From the NCBI GenBank assembly GCA_964019335.1, contig OZ025761.1, positions 130,595-194,594 on the forward strand: 64,000 nucleotides of DNA, in the 5' to 3' direction. Source of the stretch: Diplonema japonicum. Lineage: Eukaryota > Protista > Euglenozoa: Diplonemea. The notes below the pieces were generated by a model that saw only the letters and a program-made list of their open reading frames with translations, was not told the DNA's origin and searched no databases. Numbering within the stretch: the stretch's first letter is position 1; each line of letters begins with the position of its first letter. Of the stretch, positions 6,535 through 62,051 are shown piece by piece. Both the position numbers and the translations under genes were made by a program.

Positions 6535-7337
6535 AAAGAACTAAGAAGGAAAAATAAAGTGTTTTTTTGGGGGGGGTAAAACGGTACAAGGTACACGAGC
6601 ATATAACCCACAAGAGAGGTTGTGTGTTCCTCAAGTGAGTTACTTTTGGGTCTAGCCCGTTCTCTTTCTTTTTTTCTTTTATCTTAGGGGGCAGCAGGGA
6701 TCAAGGTCTTCGGGTCTCAGGTGTGTGACGGCACCTCCCCTTACGCGAGTCAAGGTGATTAACAGAGGAAGGCAAGGGTGAACTCAAATGATGTGTTTTC
6801 CGATGCTTTTCCAGGTGGGCAGTGCAGGACCTGTTCACTCCCAAGAACCCCCCCCCCCCCCCCCCCCCCCCAAGAAATACTTCTTTTTTTTCATGTTTTA
6901 AAAAACATATGCACTTTTTTTCAGGGGCTCCTGGACCGTCCTCGTTATTACCCCGAGCCTCCCAGGAACCTTCTTCCCTGTGCAACTCTCTGTTCACGAT
7001 GCGGTCGTCGAAATCCTGCACCGTGCGTGGCTGGGCGGTAGCGAGGGGCTCGTCATATTCACCACAAAAAAAAAAAACAAAAAAAAAAAAAAAACAGCGT
7101 CTTGTTGTCGTCCTTCGCCCAAAGTACTTTTTTGTTGTTCGCATGAGCAAAAAAGGTTTTTTAAAAAGCTGCGAAAGTTTTTTGCTCGGCACAAGTTGCA
7201 TATAGTTATAAAATCATTTTTTGAAAGATAAATATTTGTAACAAAAATAATTCTTTATGTCTTTGTTGTTCGCTTCAGGACCCTCTGGGACCGCGGAACG
7301 CAGTGCCGTAACGGCGGGGCCGTGGAGGCGTCTCACA

Positions 7338-8308
7338 CTACAGGAAGTGGCCTGATCTTGCCCCCGGGTGCGTAACGCCCCGCGTGAATGGGTCTGCCTT
7401 CTGCTCGTGTGTGGAAACCCACTGGGCGTGGAGATTTGCCTGACGCTCCTCTACGAGAGTGTATATGTCAGCAATTATCTTATTTCCCATGAAGCCGAAC
7501 TCCTGGTTTGGCACGCCCGCACCAGCCTCGTCGAAGTGCAGGTCCACCCCGACCTTCTCGCACCTCTGCAAAAAGCAACCGAACCTCCCGAGAGCTGCCT
7601 CGCGGCTCTGTGCTAGGACGAAGAAGTTGTCAATCCAGCACACACCCTGCTCCTCCGGCAGCAACACCGCGGTCCTCTGCGCGATAGCTGGCGCCCAACT
7701 CCACCCCATCGCCATCACGTCCATCACCACGGTGCTGAACTGAAACTCTCGCCCCGAAGAACTTCGCTACCGCGGGTGACAGCGGGAAATGGTAAAACCA
7801 ACTCCTCGCATCTGCCGTCACAACATACCTTGCGCGTAGGAAGCGCTCGATCACCTCCAAGATCGGCGGCAAAAACATCTGGGGGGGTGGCTTCATCAAG
7901 AGGTTCAGCTTCCTGCCGTCCTGAACCAGACGGAGATCTCCCGACTTCTTTGGCACGGTGAACAGGGGGAGGATGACCTCCGGGTGGCGCGTCGGGAGGT
8001 GGCGAAGCATGCCCCGCGATGTGCCCCTCAAGTACCTCGGAGCCTCCATCTCTGTCAATGCCCCTTCCTTCAGCGCACCCAGCATGTTCACAGCAGATGA
8101 CATCGACGACACCGTCAAGGATCCCACGCTCGTCCAACTCTTTGAGGGCAGGGACACTGATCCTGCTTCTCGATATCGCCGCGATGTCGCCGTCTGAACC
8201 CCGCTGGGCGGGGCGAGACACCAAACAAACGCGGTTCTGCGTCATATCCAATGAAGGGATCAGCCGAGGGGAAAGTCTCGAAACCGTCCAAAGGGTCGTA
8301 GTCAGCAC
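7338..8308 (-). pseudogene. Reverse transcriptase / RNase H of the YR retrotransposon (frameshifted, internally deleted)
   Basis: Motifs LFTVPKKSGDLRLVQDGRKLN, ADARSWFYHF, MGWSWAP, WIDNFFV and the RNase H tail WVSTHEQKADPFTR are spread over several frames. Confidence 0.85.
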
Positions 8309-19191: not shown

Positions 19192-19410
19192 AAAATGGGG
19201 GAGGAGTGAACGCCCCTCATTTCTTTTTTTGTTTTTGTTTTTTTTTTTGCTTTGAACATATTGATTTAACGAATTGTTATTAAAAAAGAGTAGTGGCACA
19301 AACAATCAACCGACTTGCTTTTTTCTCTTTTTTCTCTTTTTTTTTTTTTTTTTTCTTTTTTTTTTTTTTTATGGGGTGATCCCCTTAAGCATCGCCTTTT
19401 TTTTTTTCCA

Positions 19411-19723
19411 GGTGGTGGGGATAACATGGAAATATAAAGAAGTACATCAGATGTGTTGTTCACTGTTGACCTCCTCGTCGGTCATCACCGGTAGCGCCCA
19501 AGTGGAAGAAGCAGATGCTCTGGGTGGCGAACAGGCAGCAAACTACACGGGCTCAGAATCTTGGTTACCCGGGGCGCCCCGGCTGGGGTTGAGCTGCACA
19601 CCGCACGCATTAAGGACACGACGCGGAACGCAGAAGAAGCTACAGCTAGGCCGAGGTGCGCCCCCTGTAATCAAGTAGATGGTGCTTGTGCAGGGTGCCC
19701 CCACCGGCTTCCTTTAAATCATC

Positions 19724-19726
<3 letters not shown>
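19411..19726 (+). mobile_element. Short non-coding retroposon with 5' HDV-like ribozyme (copy 1; ribozyme 19411-19539)
   Basis: P1 ggtggtg/catcacc, P3 acc/ggt, L3 tcctcgtc, P1.1 gg, P4 cgccca/tgggtg, J4/2 gcgaa. One of five dispersed copies. Confidence 0.85.
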
Positions 19727-19758
<32 letters not shown>

Positions 19759-20599
19759 GGTGGTCCTCAAGTGGGATTTGTCCTTAAACATCGCCTTTTT
19801 TTTTTTAAAACTGGGCGAGGCTTTCCAGAAGGGGTGCATTAAAGAAACTAACAGATGTTCACTTTGCAGCCTTCACACCCACGAACAGTGCAGTGGGAGG
19901 AACACTGTGCCGCCCCTTTTCTTTCCATGTCTCTCTTCTTACAAGCCCTTGTTACATTTTTGAGGGAGCTGCCCAGCGGTAGGTGCAACGATTTGTTAAA
20001 TTTAAAAAAAAGCTTTTTTTTTTTTTTTTTTTTTTGTTCTAACCCGGGTTTTACTTGTTAGGTGAACCCCCCAACAGCGATCCCTTCTACGATGCCTTTT
20101 TTTCCCCTTCTTCTCTTTTCTTTTTCTTTTTCTTCTGAGGCTAGGGTGGCACCTATGTTCTAACCGTACTCTGTGCTCTCTTGTTATTTTTTATTATTAT
20201 TATTTTTTTTTTTAGTCGTGTCGCTTCATTCGGTTGATTGCCCCCCCCCCCCCACCCCTATTTAGTGATTTCCTTCTTTTCTAAATGTGTGATGATGATA
20301 CCTTTGATAAGCCAACATTTTCTTTTTACCAAACCAAGAAGCAGCAGTTTCCCATTTGGCCTCGGCCTCGGCAGCCATTTACGAGAAAGCGATTCTTTCC
20401 CCTAAAGGACCAGAATTGCTCACGGAGAAAACCAATGTCTCCTCTTTCCTGCCAATCTGACATGGGGGCCGGTACATAGCTATGCCAAGCCGTAAATCAA
20501 TGGAATGGGTTTGCGGGTCTGCGGTTGGTGTAGTTGCCTCTGTTACACAGGTTAACGTTCTTTTTTTTTTGCATCTCAATCTTCACAGTTTTCATAAAA

Positions 20600-36478: not shown

Positions 36479-37530
36479 CGCAGACCGCTCGAAGCGTGGC
36501 GGGTGAGGAGGATAATCGCCGGGGCGGTGCCGTACCTCAGCCCGTATGCGAAACAAGTTTTACTCTCCCCTCCTGAAGAACCTGATGAGGAGGGAGGTGA
36601 AGGGAGCGAGGAAGAAGCCGACCACCTGGGTAGGGGGAGGACGGACAAAGCAGCGGGAACGCTCAATTGCGATGTTTGTGATGCTGCGAAGGGCAGCACA
36701 GTTAGGTTGCTGCGACACCAGCTTTGGGAGTGCGAGGTCGCATTGGAGGTGCAGAAGAGGAGGTATATACCGGTCTGGTCAGGAGCGAAAGGTGGCCGGT
36801 CTGTTTGGAGCTGCACGGGATTCTCCCGAGGAAGGTCGTGTTCCGCGGTTTGGAGAGGCTGCAGAGGTATTTGGCAGAGGTGGTGAGGCGCAGGGACGAT
36901 GCTCTGGCGGTGAAGCGGTTCGCGGTTGAGAAGGAACCGCCGTGGATGGTGACGACTCAAGGAAGGCGTTTCGAGGCGCCAAAGGTTGTGGAACTGTACA
37001 AGCTCAAGCTGACCCCGCAGCTCAGGGAGTATGGTGATCAGGTGCTGAGATGGCTGGCTGCGCTGCGGTGGGCGGAGGAGGGAACGTCCGTGTCGGCGAT
37101 CAAGCTGGCGATTGACTTCGAGTGCTACACGAAGAAGACGCTGGGGGTTAACATCAACACGACGATTGACATCGACACGAAGGCGGTGAGGGTCAAGCGG
37201 ATCCTGGATACGCTGCAAGCGACATGGATGAGGGAGAAGAGGAGACGCGCTTTTCCGGCGCAGTCATGCAAGAACGTGAGATCACTACGATCCATTGGCC
37301 GCGACCACGTCGTTGGCTTTGATAGGAGGGCCCTGTTTGCATCGGGGCTGACGGCGACCAAGCTGAAAGGACTGAGAGAAGATTACCGGAAGGAAAGGAT
37401 TGGAAGATATAAACGACAGCTAGGCACTACGGTGGGTAGCAGGGAACGACCCCAAAAGGGGAGCATCATAAGGTAGGCACGCCACCGCGGCGGGCCGTTG
37501 CTAACCACTTCGTTCCTATCATAGTGAATT
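36479..37530 (+). mobile_element. 5'-truncated non-LTR retrotransposon (CCHC knuckle + C-terminal domain)
   Basis: Encodes CDVC...LRHQLWEC and RWPVCLELHGILP. Near-identical to 59772-60740, with the shared 3' end ccacttcgttcctatcatagtgaatt(T)n. Confidence 0.8.
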
Positions 37531-37556
37531 ATTTTTTAGTACTCACAAAAAAGGAA

Positions 37557-45809: not shown

Positions 45810-45911
45810 GCAGTCGCACGTCTGCTGCCTTTTACTGCTTGATTGCACTAGTAAGGAAGTGAGGGAAAACAGTTTGTTTTTCTTCTTTTTTTTTTTTTTT
45901 TTTCTTTCCAA

Positions 45912-46045
45912 GGTGGTGGGGATAACATGAAAATATAAGAAAAACATCAGATGTGTTGTTCGCTGTTGACCTCCTCGTCGGTCATCACCGGTAGCGCCCG
46001 AGTGGAAGAACATAATGCAGATGCTCAGGGTGACGAACAGGCAGC
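45912..46045 (+). ncRNA. HDV-like self-cleaving ribozyme
   Basis: P1 45912-18/45983-89; P2 45962-68/46038-45 (one bulge); P3 45969-71/45980-82; L3 tcctcgtc; P1.1 gg 45990-91; P4 45995-46003/46023-32; J4/2 acgaa with the putative catalytic C at 46034. Confidence 0.85.
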
Positions 46046-46232
46046 AAACTGCACGAGCGCAGAAACTTGGTTACCCGGGACGCACCGGCTGGGGTTGAGC
46101 TGCACACCGCACGCATTAAGGACACGACGCGGAACGCAGAAGAAGCTGCAACTCGGCCGCGGTGCGCCCCCTGTAATCAAGTAGACAGTTCTTGTGCAGG
46201 GCGCCGCCAACACCGGCCTCCTTTAACTCATA
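45912..46232 (+). mobile_element. Short retroposon with 5' HDV-like ribozyme (copy 2)
   Basis: See the ribozyme at 45912-46045. Followed by a long stem region, a 3' hairpin and a T-tract. Confidence 0.88.
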
Positions 46233-46279
46233 TTTTTTTTGCTCGAATCGCCCTGTTTTTTTTTTTTTTTTTTTTTTAA

Positions 46280-46445
46280 AGACTGAGAGAAGATTACCGG
46301 AAGGAAAGGATTGGAAGATATAAACGACAGCTAGGCACTACGGTGGGTAGCAGGGAACGACCCCAAAAGGGGAGCATCATAAGGTAGGCACGCCACCGCG
46401 GCGGGCCGTTGCTAACCACTTCGTTCCTATCATAGTGAATTTTCT
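46280..46445 (+). mobile_element. Very short 3' fragment of the 36479/59010 non-LTR family
   Basis: Matches 37370-37530. Confidence 0.85.
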
Positions 46446-46773
46446 TTAGGCGATCCTGTCACATACTGCAGGTTCCCTCAAAGACATCTTTTTTTTTTTT
46501 GCAGGAACGAGTCTTTGACTTGTCTAAACAAAAGGGGAACGTTGGCAACGTGTTTCGGGTTGACAAACTTCTCCAGGTTTTACCCGGCACGCGTTTTTTA
46601 TATGGACCGGCACGTACAAACAACGGCCAGTTCCTCTTTTTTTTTTTTTTTTTTGTTTTAACAATATTATTGTCGAGACTAAAAACTAGTTGATGGCAGC
46701 GTAATGAGCTATTTTATTAGGTAAAATTCCGCTCGTGCGCACAAACAAATGGAGCGCCAAACTAGTTTTTTAA

Positions 46774-49186: not shown

Positions 49187-49491
49187 TTCGATAATTTAAA
49201 GGAAGCCGGTGGGGGGCGCCCTGCGCAAGCACCATCTACTTGATTACAGGGGGCGCACCAGCTTCTTCTGCGTTCCGTGTCGTGTTCTTAATGCGTGCGG
49301 TGTGCAGCTCAACCCCAGCCGATGCGTCCCGGGTAGCCAAGATTCTGGGTCCGTGCAGTTTGCTGCCTATTCGTCACCCTGAGCATCTTCTTCTCCACTC
49401 GGGCGCTACCGGTGATGACCGACGAGGAGGTCAACAGCGAACAACACATCTGATGTACTTCTCTTTGTATTTTCATGTTATCCCCACCAAC
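49187..49491 (-). mobile_element. Short retroposon with 5' HDV-like ribozyme (copy 3, antisense; ribozyme 49362-49491)
   Basis: Reverse complement of the family. P1 5' strand is gttggtg (one mismatch), and there is a small internal deletion. Confidence 0.85.
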
Positions 49492-57302: not shown

Positions 57303-57625
57303 GGTGGTGGGGATAACATGAAAATATAAGAAAAACATCAGATGTGTTGTTCGCTGTTGACCTCCTCGTCGGTCATCACCGGTAGCACCCGAGTGGAAGA
57401 ACATAATGCAGATGCTCAGGGTGACGAACAGGCAGCAAACTGCACGAGCGCAGAATCTTGGTTGCCCGGGACGCCCCGGCTGGGGTTGAGCTGCACACCG
57501 CACGCATTAAGGACACGACGCGGAACGCAGAAGAAGCTACAACTCGGCCGCGGTGCGCCCCCTGTAATCAAGTAGACAGTTCTTGTGCAGGGCGCCGCCA
57601 ACACCGGCCTCCTTTAACTCATATA
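57303..57625 (+). mobile_element. Short retroposon with 5' HDV-like ribozyme (copy 4; ribozyme 57303-57436)
   Basis: All pairings intact; the P4 variant caccc/gggtg is fully Watson-Crick. Confidence 0.88.
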
Positions 57626-58013
57626 TTTTTTTTTTTTTCTTTTCTTTTTTTATTTAATTCCGCAAAGTTACATGAGGGGAAAAAAAGTGCCGTAAATACG
57701 AAGTTCAAAAAAAAAAAAAAAAAAGATTCGCTTTCCAGTACTTGAACCGGCGTAGAGAAACGAGTGAGACAACATAGCCACTTCTTTTTAAAGCGTTCAA
57801 AACATAATTCAGCATTGCGCCGATAATTGTAGTCAATTAGAAAATTTAGCCTTTTTTTTTGCAGCAGTTTTCTTGGTGTCCGAATTTCCCTCATTTAACT
57901 TTACAAAAAAATTAAATAAAAAAATATCTACTAAAATAAAAAAATCAGTTAGATTTCTTTTACTCGGAATGTTTTTTTTTTTCCCACTCGCTTCGCAAAT
58001 TAAACTACTCGTG

Positions 58014-59009: not shown

Positions 59010-60740
59010 CATGGAGTTGAACCTCCGGAAGACGGTGGTTATCGGGAAGTGTGCGATCCACGTCGGTAGTGAGGTGGACGGAAGAAGAAGGAAGGTGCGG
59101 CTCAGCACAGTCTGCAAGCATAAGGCCTTGGGCACTATGCTGAATACAACGGCATGCGGCACGATTTGGAATGACGCTGCGGTCGCAGCGAGGCAGAAAG
59201 TGGACAGGCTGGCTTCGACCCGGCTGTCTTTCCGGAGGAAGGAAAGTCTCATCAGAACTCATATTATGCCGGGCCTGTTGTACAGCTCGAGTTTCTCCCC
59301 ACCGAGTGACTGGAGCCTCAGTCAGCTTAAGGGCTCGGTCGTGAAATGCCTGTGGGGCCCACTATAGGGGAAGGTCTCCGGACGTGGTACTGTCGATCCT
59401 GGCGCGAGCGCACCGTGTAGACCCGCTGTGTGCCGTGGTGTACAGCGCCTTGATGATGCTGAGGAGGTGCTGGCTGAAGCGAGACGGGGCAATGGCGGCA
59501 TGGACGCAGTTGGCACAAGCGTACGGGACTTCAGGGCAGGTGAAGCCGAGGGGGGTCGTAGGAAATGTGCTCCTGAGGTGTCTCCCGGCGATCGGTTGGA
59601 AGTGGGAGAGGCTGGCGAGCTGGCACAAAGGAGGGAACCCTGGGCATGACCTCAGGGAGGCTCTACGGAGGATGAGGACATCGGGAATCGTGAAGGCGCG
59701 AAGCACAATGGCCGGGCTAGGGTTGGGCGCGGCCCCTACAACGAACGCTTACTGGATGAAGTGCTGCGCGCGCAGGCCGATCGAAGTGTGGCGGGTGAGG
59801 AGGATAATCGCCTGGGCGGTGCCGTACCTCAGCCCGTATGCGAAACAAGTTTTGCTCACCCCTCCTGAGGAGCCTGATGAGGAGGGAGGTGAGAGGGACG
59901 AGGGAGACGACCATCCGGGTAGAGGGAGGACGGACAAAGCGGCGGGTACGCTCAATTGCGACGTTTGTGATGCTACGAAGGGCAGCACGGTCAGGCTGCT
60001 GCGACACCAGCTATGGGAGTGCTTTGGAGGTGCAGAAGAAGGAAGCGTATACCGGTCTGGTCAGGAGCGAAAGGTGGCCGGTATGTTTGGAACTACACGG
60101 GGTCCTCCCGAGGAAGGTCGTGTTCCGCGGTTTGGAGAGGCTGCAGAGGTATTTGGCAGAGGTGGTGAGGCGCAGGGACGATGCTCTGGCGGTGAAGCGG
60201 TTCGCGGTTGAGAAGGAACCGCCGTGGATGGTGACGACTCAAGGAAGGCGTTTCGAGGCGCCAAAGGTTGTGGAACTGTACAAGCTCAAGCTGACCCCGC
60301 AACTCAGGGAGTATGGTGATCAGGTGCTGAGATGGCTGGCTGCGCTGCGGTGGGCGGAGGAAGGAACGTCGATCGAGCTGGCGATTAACTTCGAGTGCTA
60401 CACAAAGAAGACGTTGGGGGTCAACGTCAACACGACGATTGACATCGACAAGAAGGCGGTGAGGATCCTGGATACGCCACAAGCGACATGGATGAGGGAG
60501 AAGAGGAGACGCGCTTTTCCGGCGCAGTCATGCAAGAACGTGAGATCACTACGATCCATTGGCCGCGACCACGTCGTTGGTGTTGATAGGAGGGCCCTGT
60601 TTGCATGGATTGGAAGATATAAACGACAGCTAGGCACTACGGTGGGTAGCAGGGAACGACCCCAAAAGGGGAGCATCATAAGGTAGGCACGCCACCGCGG
60701 CGGGCCGTTGCTAACCACTTCGTTCCTATCATAGTGAATT
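59010..60740 (+). mobile_element. 5'-truncated, frameshifted non-LTR retrotransposon (RT thumb to 3' end)
   Basis: GMELNLRKT..KALG..LIRTHIMPGLLY resembles the RT C-terminus. Also CDVC..HQLWEC and the same 3' end as 37530 and 46445. Confidence 0.8.
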
Positions 60741-60936
60741 TTTTTTTTTCCTTTTATCTTTCCACACTTTCAGTTACAGAAAACTGCATTATGTTCCGTG
60801 TGTGTAGACAACAACAACAAAACAAAAAAACAAAAAACTCTCTTCTTTTTTTTTTTTCTCGCCCATTCTACCATATATATGCCTATTCTGATGTAGATTT
60901 TCTCTTTTTCCTTTTTTCTTTTTTTTTTTTTTTTTT

Positions 60937-61250
60937 GGTGGCGGGATAACATGAAAATATAAGAAAAACATCAGATGTGTTGTTCGCTGTTGACCTCCTC
61001 GTCGGTCATCACCGGTAGCGCCCGAGTGGAAGAACATAATGCAGATGCTCAGGGTGACGAACAGGCAGCAAACTGCACGAGCGCAGAATCTTGGTTGCCC
61101 GGGACGCACCGGCTGGGGTTGAGCTGCACACCGCACGCATTAAGGACACAACGCGGAACGCAGAAGAAGCTACAACTCGGCCGCGGTGCGCCCCCTGTAA
61201 TCAAGTAGACAGTTCTTGTGCAGGGCGCCGCCAACACCGGCCTCCTTTAA

Positions 61251-61253
<3 letters not shown>
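60937..61253 (+). mobile_element. Short retroposon with 5' HDV-like ribozyme (copy 5; ribozyme 60937-61069)
   Basis: P1 5' strand is ggtggcg (one mismatch). Followed by (TA)n and poly(T). Confidence 0.85.
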
Positions 61254-61298
<45 letters not shown>

Positions 61299-62051
61299 TT
61301 TCAAAACAGAATTATTTCAGTCCGAAGAAATAGATTGCACCAATCGTCCACAATAGCGCTGATACAGCATCCGAAGCGGAGGCGAAGCTCCAAAAAGGGA
61401 GCATTCTTTTTTCTCTCTTTCTTTTTCTTTTTTTCTTTTTTCTTTTTTTTTTTTGGGGCTGAAAAAACATTGAGTGAAAACGGGTTTGCGAAATGTAGGT
61501 ATCCTCTCTATTCTTCTTTTCTTTTCGTATTTCTTTCTTCAACCCTGCAGGGAAAACCAGGTTTATAGTTTTTTTTTTTTTTTTTTCTTTTCCCTGCTCC
61601 GTCCAAAGTGCATTGTGTACTTTCTATTCACCCTCCCACCATATAATATTTTTATAATTTTATATTTTTGAAAAAAGCAAAAACTACGGGGGGGGGAAAA
61701 AAAGGTAACCCCTTCCTCTTTGTTTTTTAACAAAAACAAGAGAAAGGAGGTTCATCAAAAAAAGGGGGGGGGGGGAGATGACTTATATTGACAAAAAGAA
61801 TGGCAGAAGAAACATCGACTTAAAGATGCCTGGATCATGAAAGAAAAAAAAAGAAGAGGGGATGGGGGGGGGGGGGGGGGTTAACGACGCAGAACTGTAA
61901 TTATTGTCATGGCTCAGCACAAGACAAAAAAAAAAATTGATTTTGCACGAGGGTAAGGGTATCGTTGCATTCCGTGAATCCCCAGGTAGTCAAACAACTC
62001 CACAAGAGTGTTGCTTTCTGGATTGCCATGTGTGGCCTACATTTAAGAGGT

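Follow-up and report, generated by a model that had tools for sequence, protein, structure and literature searches.

Why do copies of a dispersed, non-coding repeat in a diplonemid genome all begin at the same short motif, and what generates that precise 5ʹ end? This question is raised by a stretch of 64,000 nt from Diplonema japonicum (assembly GCA_964019335.1, OZ025761.1:130,595-194,594, forward strand), termed the window, in which a unit of approximately 322 bp plus tail is present in five copies. The copy that begins at window position 45912 is, with good confidence, a non-coding, non-autonomous retroposon resembling a short interspersed nuclear element (SINE). It is headed by a predicted self-cleaving ribozyme of the hepatitis delta virus (HDV) type, would be released from read-through transcripts, and would be mobilised by a long interspersed nuclear element (LINE) family, LINE-T. 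An earlier reading made from the letters of the window alone, referred to as the original prediction, had proposed a non-coding retroposon with such a head. It is supported by the hallmarks of the fold, placed precisely at the 5ʹ end, by a 3ʹ terminus and tail that a LINE also carries, by LINE heads with the same fold, and by co-orientation with neighbouring open reading frames (ORFs). Positions given without a locus number refer to the window; L-numbers (L003, L044, L049 and others) denote loci taken from the same genome.

The SINE and its predicted ribozyme

The five copies claimed in the original prediction were recovered by two routes. The core 15-mer has five exact matches in the window against 1.0 expected by chance, a chance figure that allows up to three mismatches, and an alignment of the five copies with their flanks places their starts at 19411, 45912, 57303 and 60937 on the plus strand and at 49491 on the minus strand. 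The alignment also agrees with the claim that homology begins exactly at GGTGGTG, a motif that reads GTTGGTG in the 49491 copy and GGTGGC-GGG in the 60937 copy. At the other end, the last homologous letters in the five-copy alignment are ...CCTTTAACTCATAT or ...TTTAAATCATCGAG, after which (AT)n(T)n begins, and both ends of the window copies are flanked by T-runs.

Beyond the window, the repeat is a high-copy family. In the assembly searched (62.5 Mb, 132 contigs), the 23-nt core running from P3 through L3 to P1ʹ has 486 exact copies, and the reversed control has none. A first look at the assembly yielded 1279–1563 SINE candidates, of which the 40 that were scored are 96–100% identical. The repeat is abundant also in two related organisms, as seen in Logan contigs assembled from sequencing runs, none of which is recorded as RNA. 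A pattern scan of metagenomes returned seven matches, all of them unrelated and due to chance.

The predicted ribozyme fold occupies the first 134 nt of the SINE (Table 1). All sequence hallmarks of the HDV nested double pseudoknot, namely the layout of helices P1, P2, P3, P1.1 and P4 with loop L3 and the joining segment J4/2, were found as proposed, and they start at the first base of the element. In copy 45912, the 7 bp that P1 forms with 45983-45989 comprise six Watson-Crick pairs and one G.U pair. The segment P3/L3/P3ʹ is unchanged in nine of nine aligned copies. P4 varies compatibly between copies, again as predicted: the CACCC of copy 57303 makes a G.U pair into A-U, and the CGCCCA/TGGGTG of copy 19411 is typical of subfamily B. 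The hairpin proposed for the insertion in J1/2 fared less well. The minimum-energy fold does form one, but its stability is no greater than that of shuffled sequence (−4.7 kcal/mol versus −3.0 ± 2.0 for shuffles, not significant).

The same fold at the head of two LINE families

A search of the genome for reverse transcriptase (RT) domains led to 12 LINE loci that were fetched for comparison. These include LINE-T, in whose single ORF no RNase H domain was detected; the copy at L050 represents a subfamily that is 77% identical to L049 and L054. A protein from a EukProt transcriptome assembly matches the LINE-T ORF at 100% identity; next in line as relatives of the ORF come LINEs of Diplonema papillatum, at 35–45%. 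A second, poly(A)-tailed family, LINE-pA (L044), encodes an ORF1 and a 1444-aa ORF2 with APE, RT and RNase H domains.

Both families open with their own version of the fold. LINE-T begins GGGGCT..., preceded by a T-run and three to four further bases. Its J1/2 segment is 46 nt long and holds an ATG, and helices P2–P4 overlap the first codons. The fold is kept in LINE-T subfamily T2, with one double change from C-G to U-A and two wobble changes in P4 and a shifted register in P2. Between subfamilies T1 and T2, identity is 100% in P1, 83% in the core and 76% in J1/2, and 63–67% over the next 1.2 kb of the ORF. In LINE-pA, J1/2 is 65 nt long and contains a 27-nt A-run and ATG triplets; at L044, the homology of a neighbouring upstream repeat stops 5 nt before G1 of the LINE.

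Set side by side, the heads share an invariant core within helices of differing sequence. Whole predicted ribozymes span about 116–134 nt. P1 comprises 7 bp in the SINE, 6 bp in LINE-T and 7 bp in LINE-pA, P1ʹ stands directly after P3ʹ, and a GG follows P1ʹ in every family. P3 is either ACC/GGT or GCC/GGC, and L3 reads UCCUCGUC, UCCACGU, UCCAAGU or UCCAAGG. J4/2 reads ACGAA in SINE subfamily A, GCGAA in SINE subfamily B, GCAAA in LINE-T and ACCAA in LINE-pA; HDV itself reads GCGAA at this place. Common to all families are the L3 pattern U-C-C-N-N-G, the GG:CC pair of P1.1 and the C-N-A-A of J4/2. P2 and P4 are likewise present throughout, with sequences that differ and complementarity that is kept, P4 being distinct and paired in each family. 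This covariation between families around an invariant core is the main evidence for the predicted ribozyme function.

Table 1. Features of SINE copy 45912, the other SINE copies of the window, and the LINE families with ribozyme-like heads.
Feature	Location	Strand	Remarks
P1 5ʹ strand GGTGGTG	45912..45918	+	predicted cleavage site 5ʹ of G45912
J1/2 insertion, 43 nt	45919..45961	+	9-bp hairpin possible; P1.2-like peripheral domain
P2 5ʹ strand GCTGTTG	45962..45968	+	7 pairs with 46038-46045, one bulged G
P3 ACC / L3 TCCTCGTC (RNA UCCUCGUC) / P3ʹ GGT	45969..45982	+	P3 45969-71 with 45980-82; L3 45972-79
P1 3ʹ strand CATCACC, then P1.1 GG	45983..45991	+	GG 45990-91 pairs with C45973-C45974
P4 stem-loop CGCCC...GGGTG, inward extension	45995..46032	+	compatible variants in copies 57303 and 19411
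J4/2 ACGAA, candidate catalytic C46034	46033..46037	+	
P2 3ʹ strand CAGGCAGC	46038..46045	+	
SINE body	46046..46216	+	no ORF
3ʹ terminus CCTCCTTTAACTCATAT, then T-run	46217..46240	+	16/17 nt match LINE-T 3ʹ end
SINE copy, subfamily A (main finding)	45912..46233	+	ribozyme-like head, body, LINE-type 3ʹ terminus
SINE copy, subfamily B	19411..19755	+	tail ...TTTAAATCATCGAG + T29; J4/2 GCGAA
SINE copy, B-like, degraded	49187..49491	-	G2->T in P1; 13-nt internal deletion
SINE copy, subfamily A	57303..57638	+	P4 variant CACCC
SINE copy, subfamily A	60937..61301	+	P1 damaged (T6->C, 1-nt deletion); long (AT)n(T)n tail
LINE-T	L049:771-6960; L054:712-7021; L050:782-6998		one ORF (2036-2185 aa) encoding APE and RT domains
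LINE-T predicted ribozyme			P1 GGGGCT/GGCCCT (6 bp, G1.U); P2 CTGGGGA/TCCCCAG; P3 ACC/GGT; L3 UCCACGU; P1.1 GG; P4 8 bp; J4/2 GCAAA
LINE-pA predicted ribozyme	L044:1177-1308		P1 GGTAGGG/CCCTACC (7 bp); P2 GGCGGGC/GaCCCGCC; P3 GCC/GGC; L3 UCCAAGG; P4 CGGG/CCCG; J4/2 ACCAA

A 3ʹ end shared with LINE-T

While the head of the SINE is shared in kind with two LINE families, its 3ʹ end matches that of one of them. The last 17 nt of the SINE agree with the end of LINE-T at 16 of 17 positions, and the same (AT)n(T)n tail follows (L049, L050 and L054). The coding strand of LINE-T ends ...CTTCCTTTAACTCATAT(AT)n(T)n, as in SINE subfamily A, whose tail is (AT)n(T)n and not poly(A). Tail length varies between the dispersed SINE copies. 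T-rich tails are unusual for LINEs, and a literature search found no poly-T-tailed elements of the class without long terminal repeats. Because this terminus and tail are common to a LINE that encodes APE and RT domains, both the plus orientation of the repeat and its retroposon nature follow. Genome-wide, LINE-T has 439 tails and 29 ribozyme-like heads, so most of its copies are 5ʹ-truncated, the classic LINE pattern. Truncated LINE-T copies likewise lie inside T-runs.

Between head and terminus, the SINE body has no match in Rfam or among tRNAs and no blastn similarity to the LINE loci. A tRNA-derived SINE was considered and rejected, as neither Rfam nor ARAGORN gave a match.

A single head and body occurs with three tails, termed A, B (...AAATCATCGAG-Tn) and C (...GCAATCAAAGCCCCA-Tn). 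The genome DNA examined yielded no partner LINE for either tail B or tail C. In subfamily C (L017:2174-2515; L023:2027-2368; L016:~1990-2060), the usual head and body extend to nt 283 and are then followed by the tail ...GCAATCAAAGCCCCA(T)n. The subfamily C tail is also found in other upstream contexts, and it may be part of another T-tailed LINE or a minimal mobile unit in its own right.

Genomic setting and insertion sites

The longest flanking ORF lies on the SINE's own strand in 37 of 39 flanks, a sense co-orientation such as read-through transcription requires. Moreover, the strands of SINE and LINE-T copies cluster by contig, with a run of minus copies followed by a run of plus copies on most contigs, and these runs mirror divergent unidirectional gene clusters.

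At the insertion sites, G1 is set off from the upstream T-run by 0–5 variable bases. An A occupies position −1 in approximately 28 of 34 SINE copies and in three of three full-length LINE-T copies (for example, window positions 45911 and 19410, and L049:770). Together, this A and G1 make an AG after a polypyrimidine tract. The A could be an untemplated addition, it could mark an RNA whose end lies one base further upstream, or it could be splice-acceptor-like in character. Single clean-looking target duplications are CTATTT (L003) and ATTTTA (L009).

Several further observations concern the surroundings of the LINEs. At L054:422-7370, a full-length LINE-T lies in sense in an intron (GTATGT...CAG) of an Fe-superoxide-dismutase gene, within the polypyrimidine tract, and the 2185-aa "ORF" of this locus is exon 1 read through into LINE-T. 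A spliced-leader-like sequence (...CAGTTTCTGTACTTTATTG; ...ACCAACGATTCTAAAGCTACAGTTTCTGTACTTTATTG) stands directly upstream of two LINE copies (L050:~640-700; L048:~880-930), reflecting either a spliced-leader RNA gene used as target or retrocopies that carry the leader. Taken together, this leader-like sequence and the GTATGT...CAG intron suggest a diplonemid host. Additionally, tRNA-like genes, read by eye, are located just downstream of A-rich repeat or LINE ends (L044:~7365-7440; L053:~7310-7385 and ~7450-7530).

Within the window, other short repeats ending in T-runs adjoin the SINE, at 46278-46500 (with copies at 37367-37539 and 60607-60746) and at 19340-19400 and 19760-19830. The HDV-like motif, as defined by the descriptor written for this analysis, is absent from these stacked neighbours, which may also be carried along by the T-tail machinery.

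Evidence for and against a functional ribozyme

The original prediction had suggested a search with an HDV descriptor. A strict, own-written HDV-like descriptor, run over 657 kb on both strands, had no matches other than at the 5ʹ ends of SINE copies and of a single LINE. A relaxed version added the LINE-T heads and one likely false match; its chance rate is 12 matches per 1.37 Mb of random sequence, or about one per 115 kb. Against this chance rate, the descriptor matches coincide with base 1 in three independent families of elements.

Conservation across copies, which the original prediction had also named as a test, was confirmed for pairing but not for covariation. In nine distinct SINE heads, 97.9% of cells are paired, compared with 29–57% in slid registers; however, there is no statistical covariation within the family. 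Alignment across families with MAFFT leaves the helices out of register, and formal pair counting was therefore possible only within the SINE, where it was not informative.

A number of results weigh against the reading of the repeat as a ribozyme-headed retroposon. Within the nine SINE heads, there are no double-sided changes and three one-sided compatible ones, an absence that is expected of a young family whose copies are decaying neutrally. No HDV-type Rfam family was placed on the SINE head at the gathering threshold or at E<=10, and the HDV, CPEB3 and drz families also fail to match the LINE-T and LINE-pA heads even at E<=10; the Rfam models are without pseudoknots, and the J1/2 segments in question measure 43–65 nt. 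Minimum-energy folds show no signal relative to shuffled sequences (z of 0.3 to −1.2), using a method that cannot represent pseudoknots. In the fold itself, P1 opens with a G-C pair rather than with the G.U of HDV, and P2 of the SINE requires a bulge. At the insertion sites, A(−1) lies outside the duplicated target at several loci, so that the RNA 5ʹ end could be one base upstream of G1. Furthermore, the longest shared flank word is 8.6 nt within a locus and 8.1 nt across loci, in a test of target duplication that is limited by the T-rich targets.

Some of these points feed alternative explanations. One, which appears unlikely, accepts the fold as real and conserved but non-cleaving: the 5ʹ module would be an internal promoter or a translation or protein-binding element, and the 5ʹ end would come from transcription starting at G1 or beside it. 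In L1Tc, the Pr77 region, which is both promoter and ribozyme (PMC3383444), is partly such a module. Likewise, most copies carry an A at −1, a hint that the 5ʹ end may lie one base further upstream, and the fold of LINE-T overlaps its start codon. However, the C-N-A-A, the U...G of L3 and P1.1 are kept in four diverged families, and a promoter alone would not need them. A promoter of its own is also unnecessary to an element in such strong sense co-orientation with genes.

A SINE of the RNA polymerase III type, with an internal promoter, a start at G1 and a downstream T-run serving as terminator and as source of a U-tail, is improbable. T-runs do follow the copies, and P4 contains a loosely box-A-like AGTGG, albeit on a weak reading. 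Yet Rfam and ARAGORN reveal no similarity to tRNA, 5S or 7SL RNA, some copies lack a T-run beyond (AT)n (L003), and LINE-T, which codes for protein, shares both the tail and the kind of head.

It is very improbable that the repeat is an ordinary one whose HDV likeness arose by chance. The missing Rfam match, thermodynamic signal and within-family covariation all fit this explanation, and the relaxed descriptor does yield chance matches. Against it, the match occurs on the first base of three unrelated families, at a chance of about 1e-5 per position for each, the core is conserved, and the helices covary between families. Finally, a poly(A)-tailed SINE on the opposite strand, with the upstream T-run as its tail and GGTGGTG as its 3ʹ end, would account for T-runs at both ends but was rejected on LINE polarity and is hardly credible, since the downstream terminus and tail equal the LINE-T 3ʹ end on the coding strand, LINE truncation agrees with the plus reading, and 0–5 variable bases part the upstream T-run from G1.

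A possible route of mobilisation

The favoured explanation, a ribozyme-headed SINE mobilised by LINE-T, suggests the following cycle. Sense copies within T-runs between the genes of unidirectional clusters would be transcribed as part of host read-through transcripts. The predicted ribozyme would then cut 5ʹ of G1 and set the RNA's 5ʹ end. The LINE-T protein, through its APE and RT domains, would recognise the 3ʹ terminus ...TCCTTTAACTCATAT(AU)n(U)n, nick A-runs on the opposite strand and prime on the U-rich tail by target-primed reverse transcription. New copies would thereby land in T-runs in sense orientation. LINE-T itself would employ its own version of the ribozyme.

A broader scheme can be put forward more tentatively, as one that may well prove wrong. 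The elements might form a promoter-less LINE/SINE system that mirrors poly(A)-type priming: U-tailed RNAs would prime on opposite-strand A-runs, land in sense in the polypyrimidine tracts of polycistronic units, be co-transcribed by the host and be freed by HDV-like ribozymes. By exchanging tails (A, B and C), a single module of ribozyme plus body would make use of various T-tailed LINEs.

Relation to known ribozyme-headed retroposons

HDV-like ribozymes, among them L1TcRz, have been described at the 5ʹ ends of the trypanosomatid L1Tc/NARTc, ingi/RIME and SIDER elements, which bear the Pr77 hallmark (PMC3185411, PMC4035085). As predicted for the Diplonema elements, the ribozyme stands at the extreme 5ʹ end of LINE and short non-autonomous partners alike, with a proposed role in release from co-transcripts, and the hosts are likewise euglenozoans with polycistronic transcription. 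There are also clear differences. The host here is a diplonemid, the tail is (AT)n(T)n rather than poly(A), J1/2 measures 43–65 nt, and the predicted ribozyme spans about 116–134 nt rather than 77. Additionally, the SINE did not arise from its LINE by deletion: the two have in common just the core motif and 17 nt at the 3ʹ end. Elements of the ingi/L1Tc clade are marked by a Pr77 signature of 77–79 nt, a poly(A) tail and short partners arising by LINE truncation; in the tail and in the origin of the SINE, the elements described here depart from this pattern.

R2 and the SIDEs offer a second parallel, with HDV-like ribozymes forming the 5ʹ ends of both the LINE and its short partners (PMC3414825, PMC3774820). 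R2 is a promoter-less LINE that is co-transcribed with a host gene, has a ribozyme-made 5ʹ end and has short non-autonomous derivatives in which both ribozyme and 3ʹ end are retained. However, R2 is site-specific for 28S rDNA and uses a restriction-like endonuclease, whereas LINE-T encodes an APE endonuclease and is found in T-runs genome-wide. Moreover, SIDEs are internal deletions of R2, which the SINE is not of its LINE. The long J1/2, able to form a helix of its own between P1 and P2, resembles that of Agam-2, a large HDV-like ribozyme with a P1.2 helix in the J1/2 linker (PMC4908430). Unlike in Agam-2, the hairpins here are weak and A/U-rich, and J1/2 holds the start codon of LINE-T and, in LINE-pA, a 27-nt A-run.

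Ribozyme-headed LINEs with short partners are therefore a kind already known from L1Tc/NARTc and R2/SIDE. New are the lineage, the sequence family, a SINE not derived from its LINE by deletion, an (AT)n(T)n tail combined with the targeting of T-runs, and the position of the predicted ribozyme over the LINE start codon. The original prediction knew of no description of the family in this lineage, and a search of the literature library consulted found no report that joins HDV-like ribozymes with Diplonema or diplonemids.

Significance

These findings would extend ribozyme-processed retrotransposition to a diplonemid. Within one genome, the device appears to be used by three or more families of elements, which offer a natural covariation set for large HDV-like ribozymes that bear a long J1/2. 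Furthermore, a LINE with a (TA)n(T)n tail, T-run targeting and strict sense orientation may serve as a simple model of promoter-less parasitism on polycistronic transcription. More speculatively, the hundreds of potentially self-cleaving intergenic sites may influence the fate of host mRNA 3ʹ ends.
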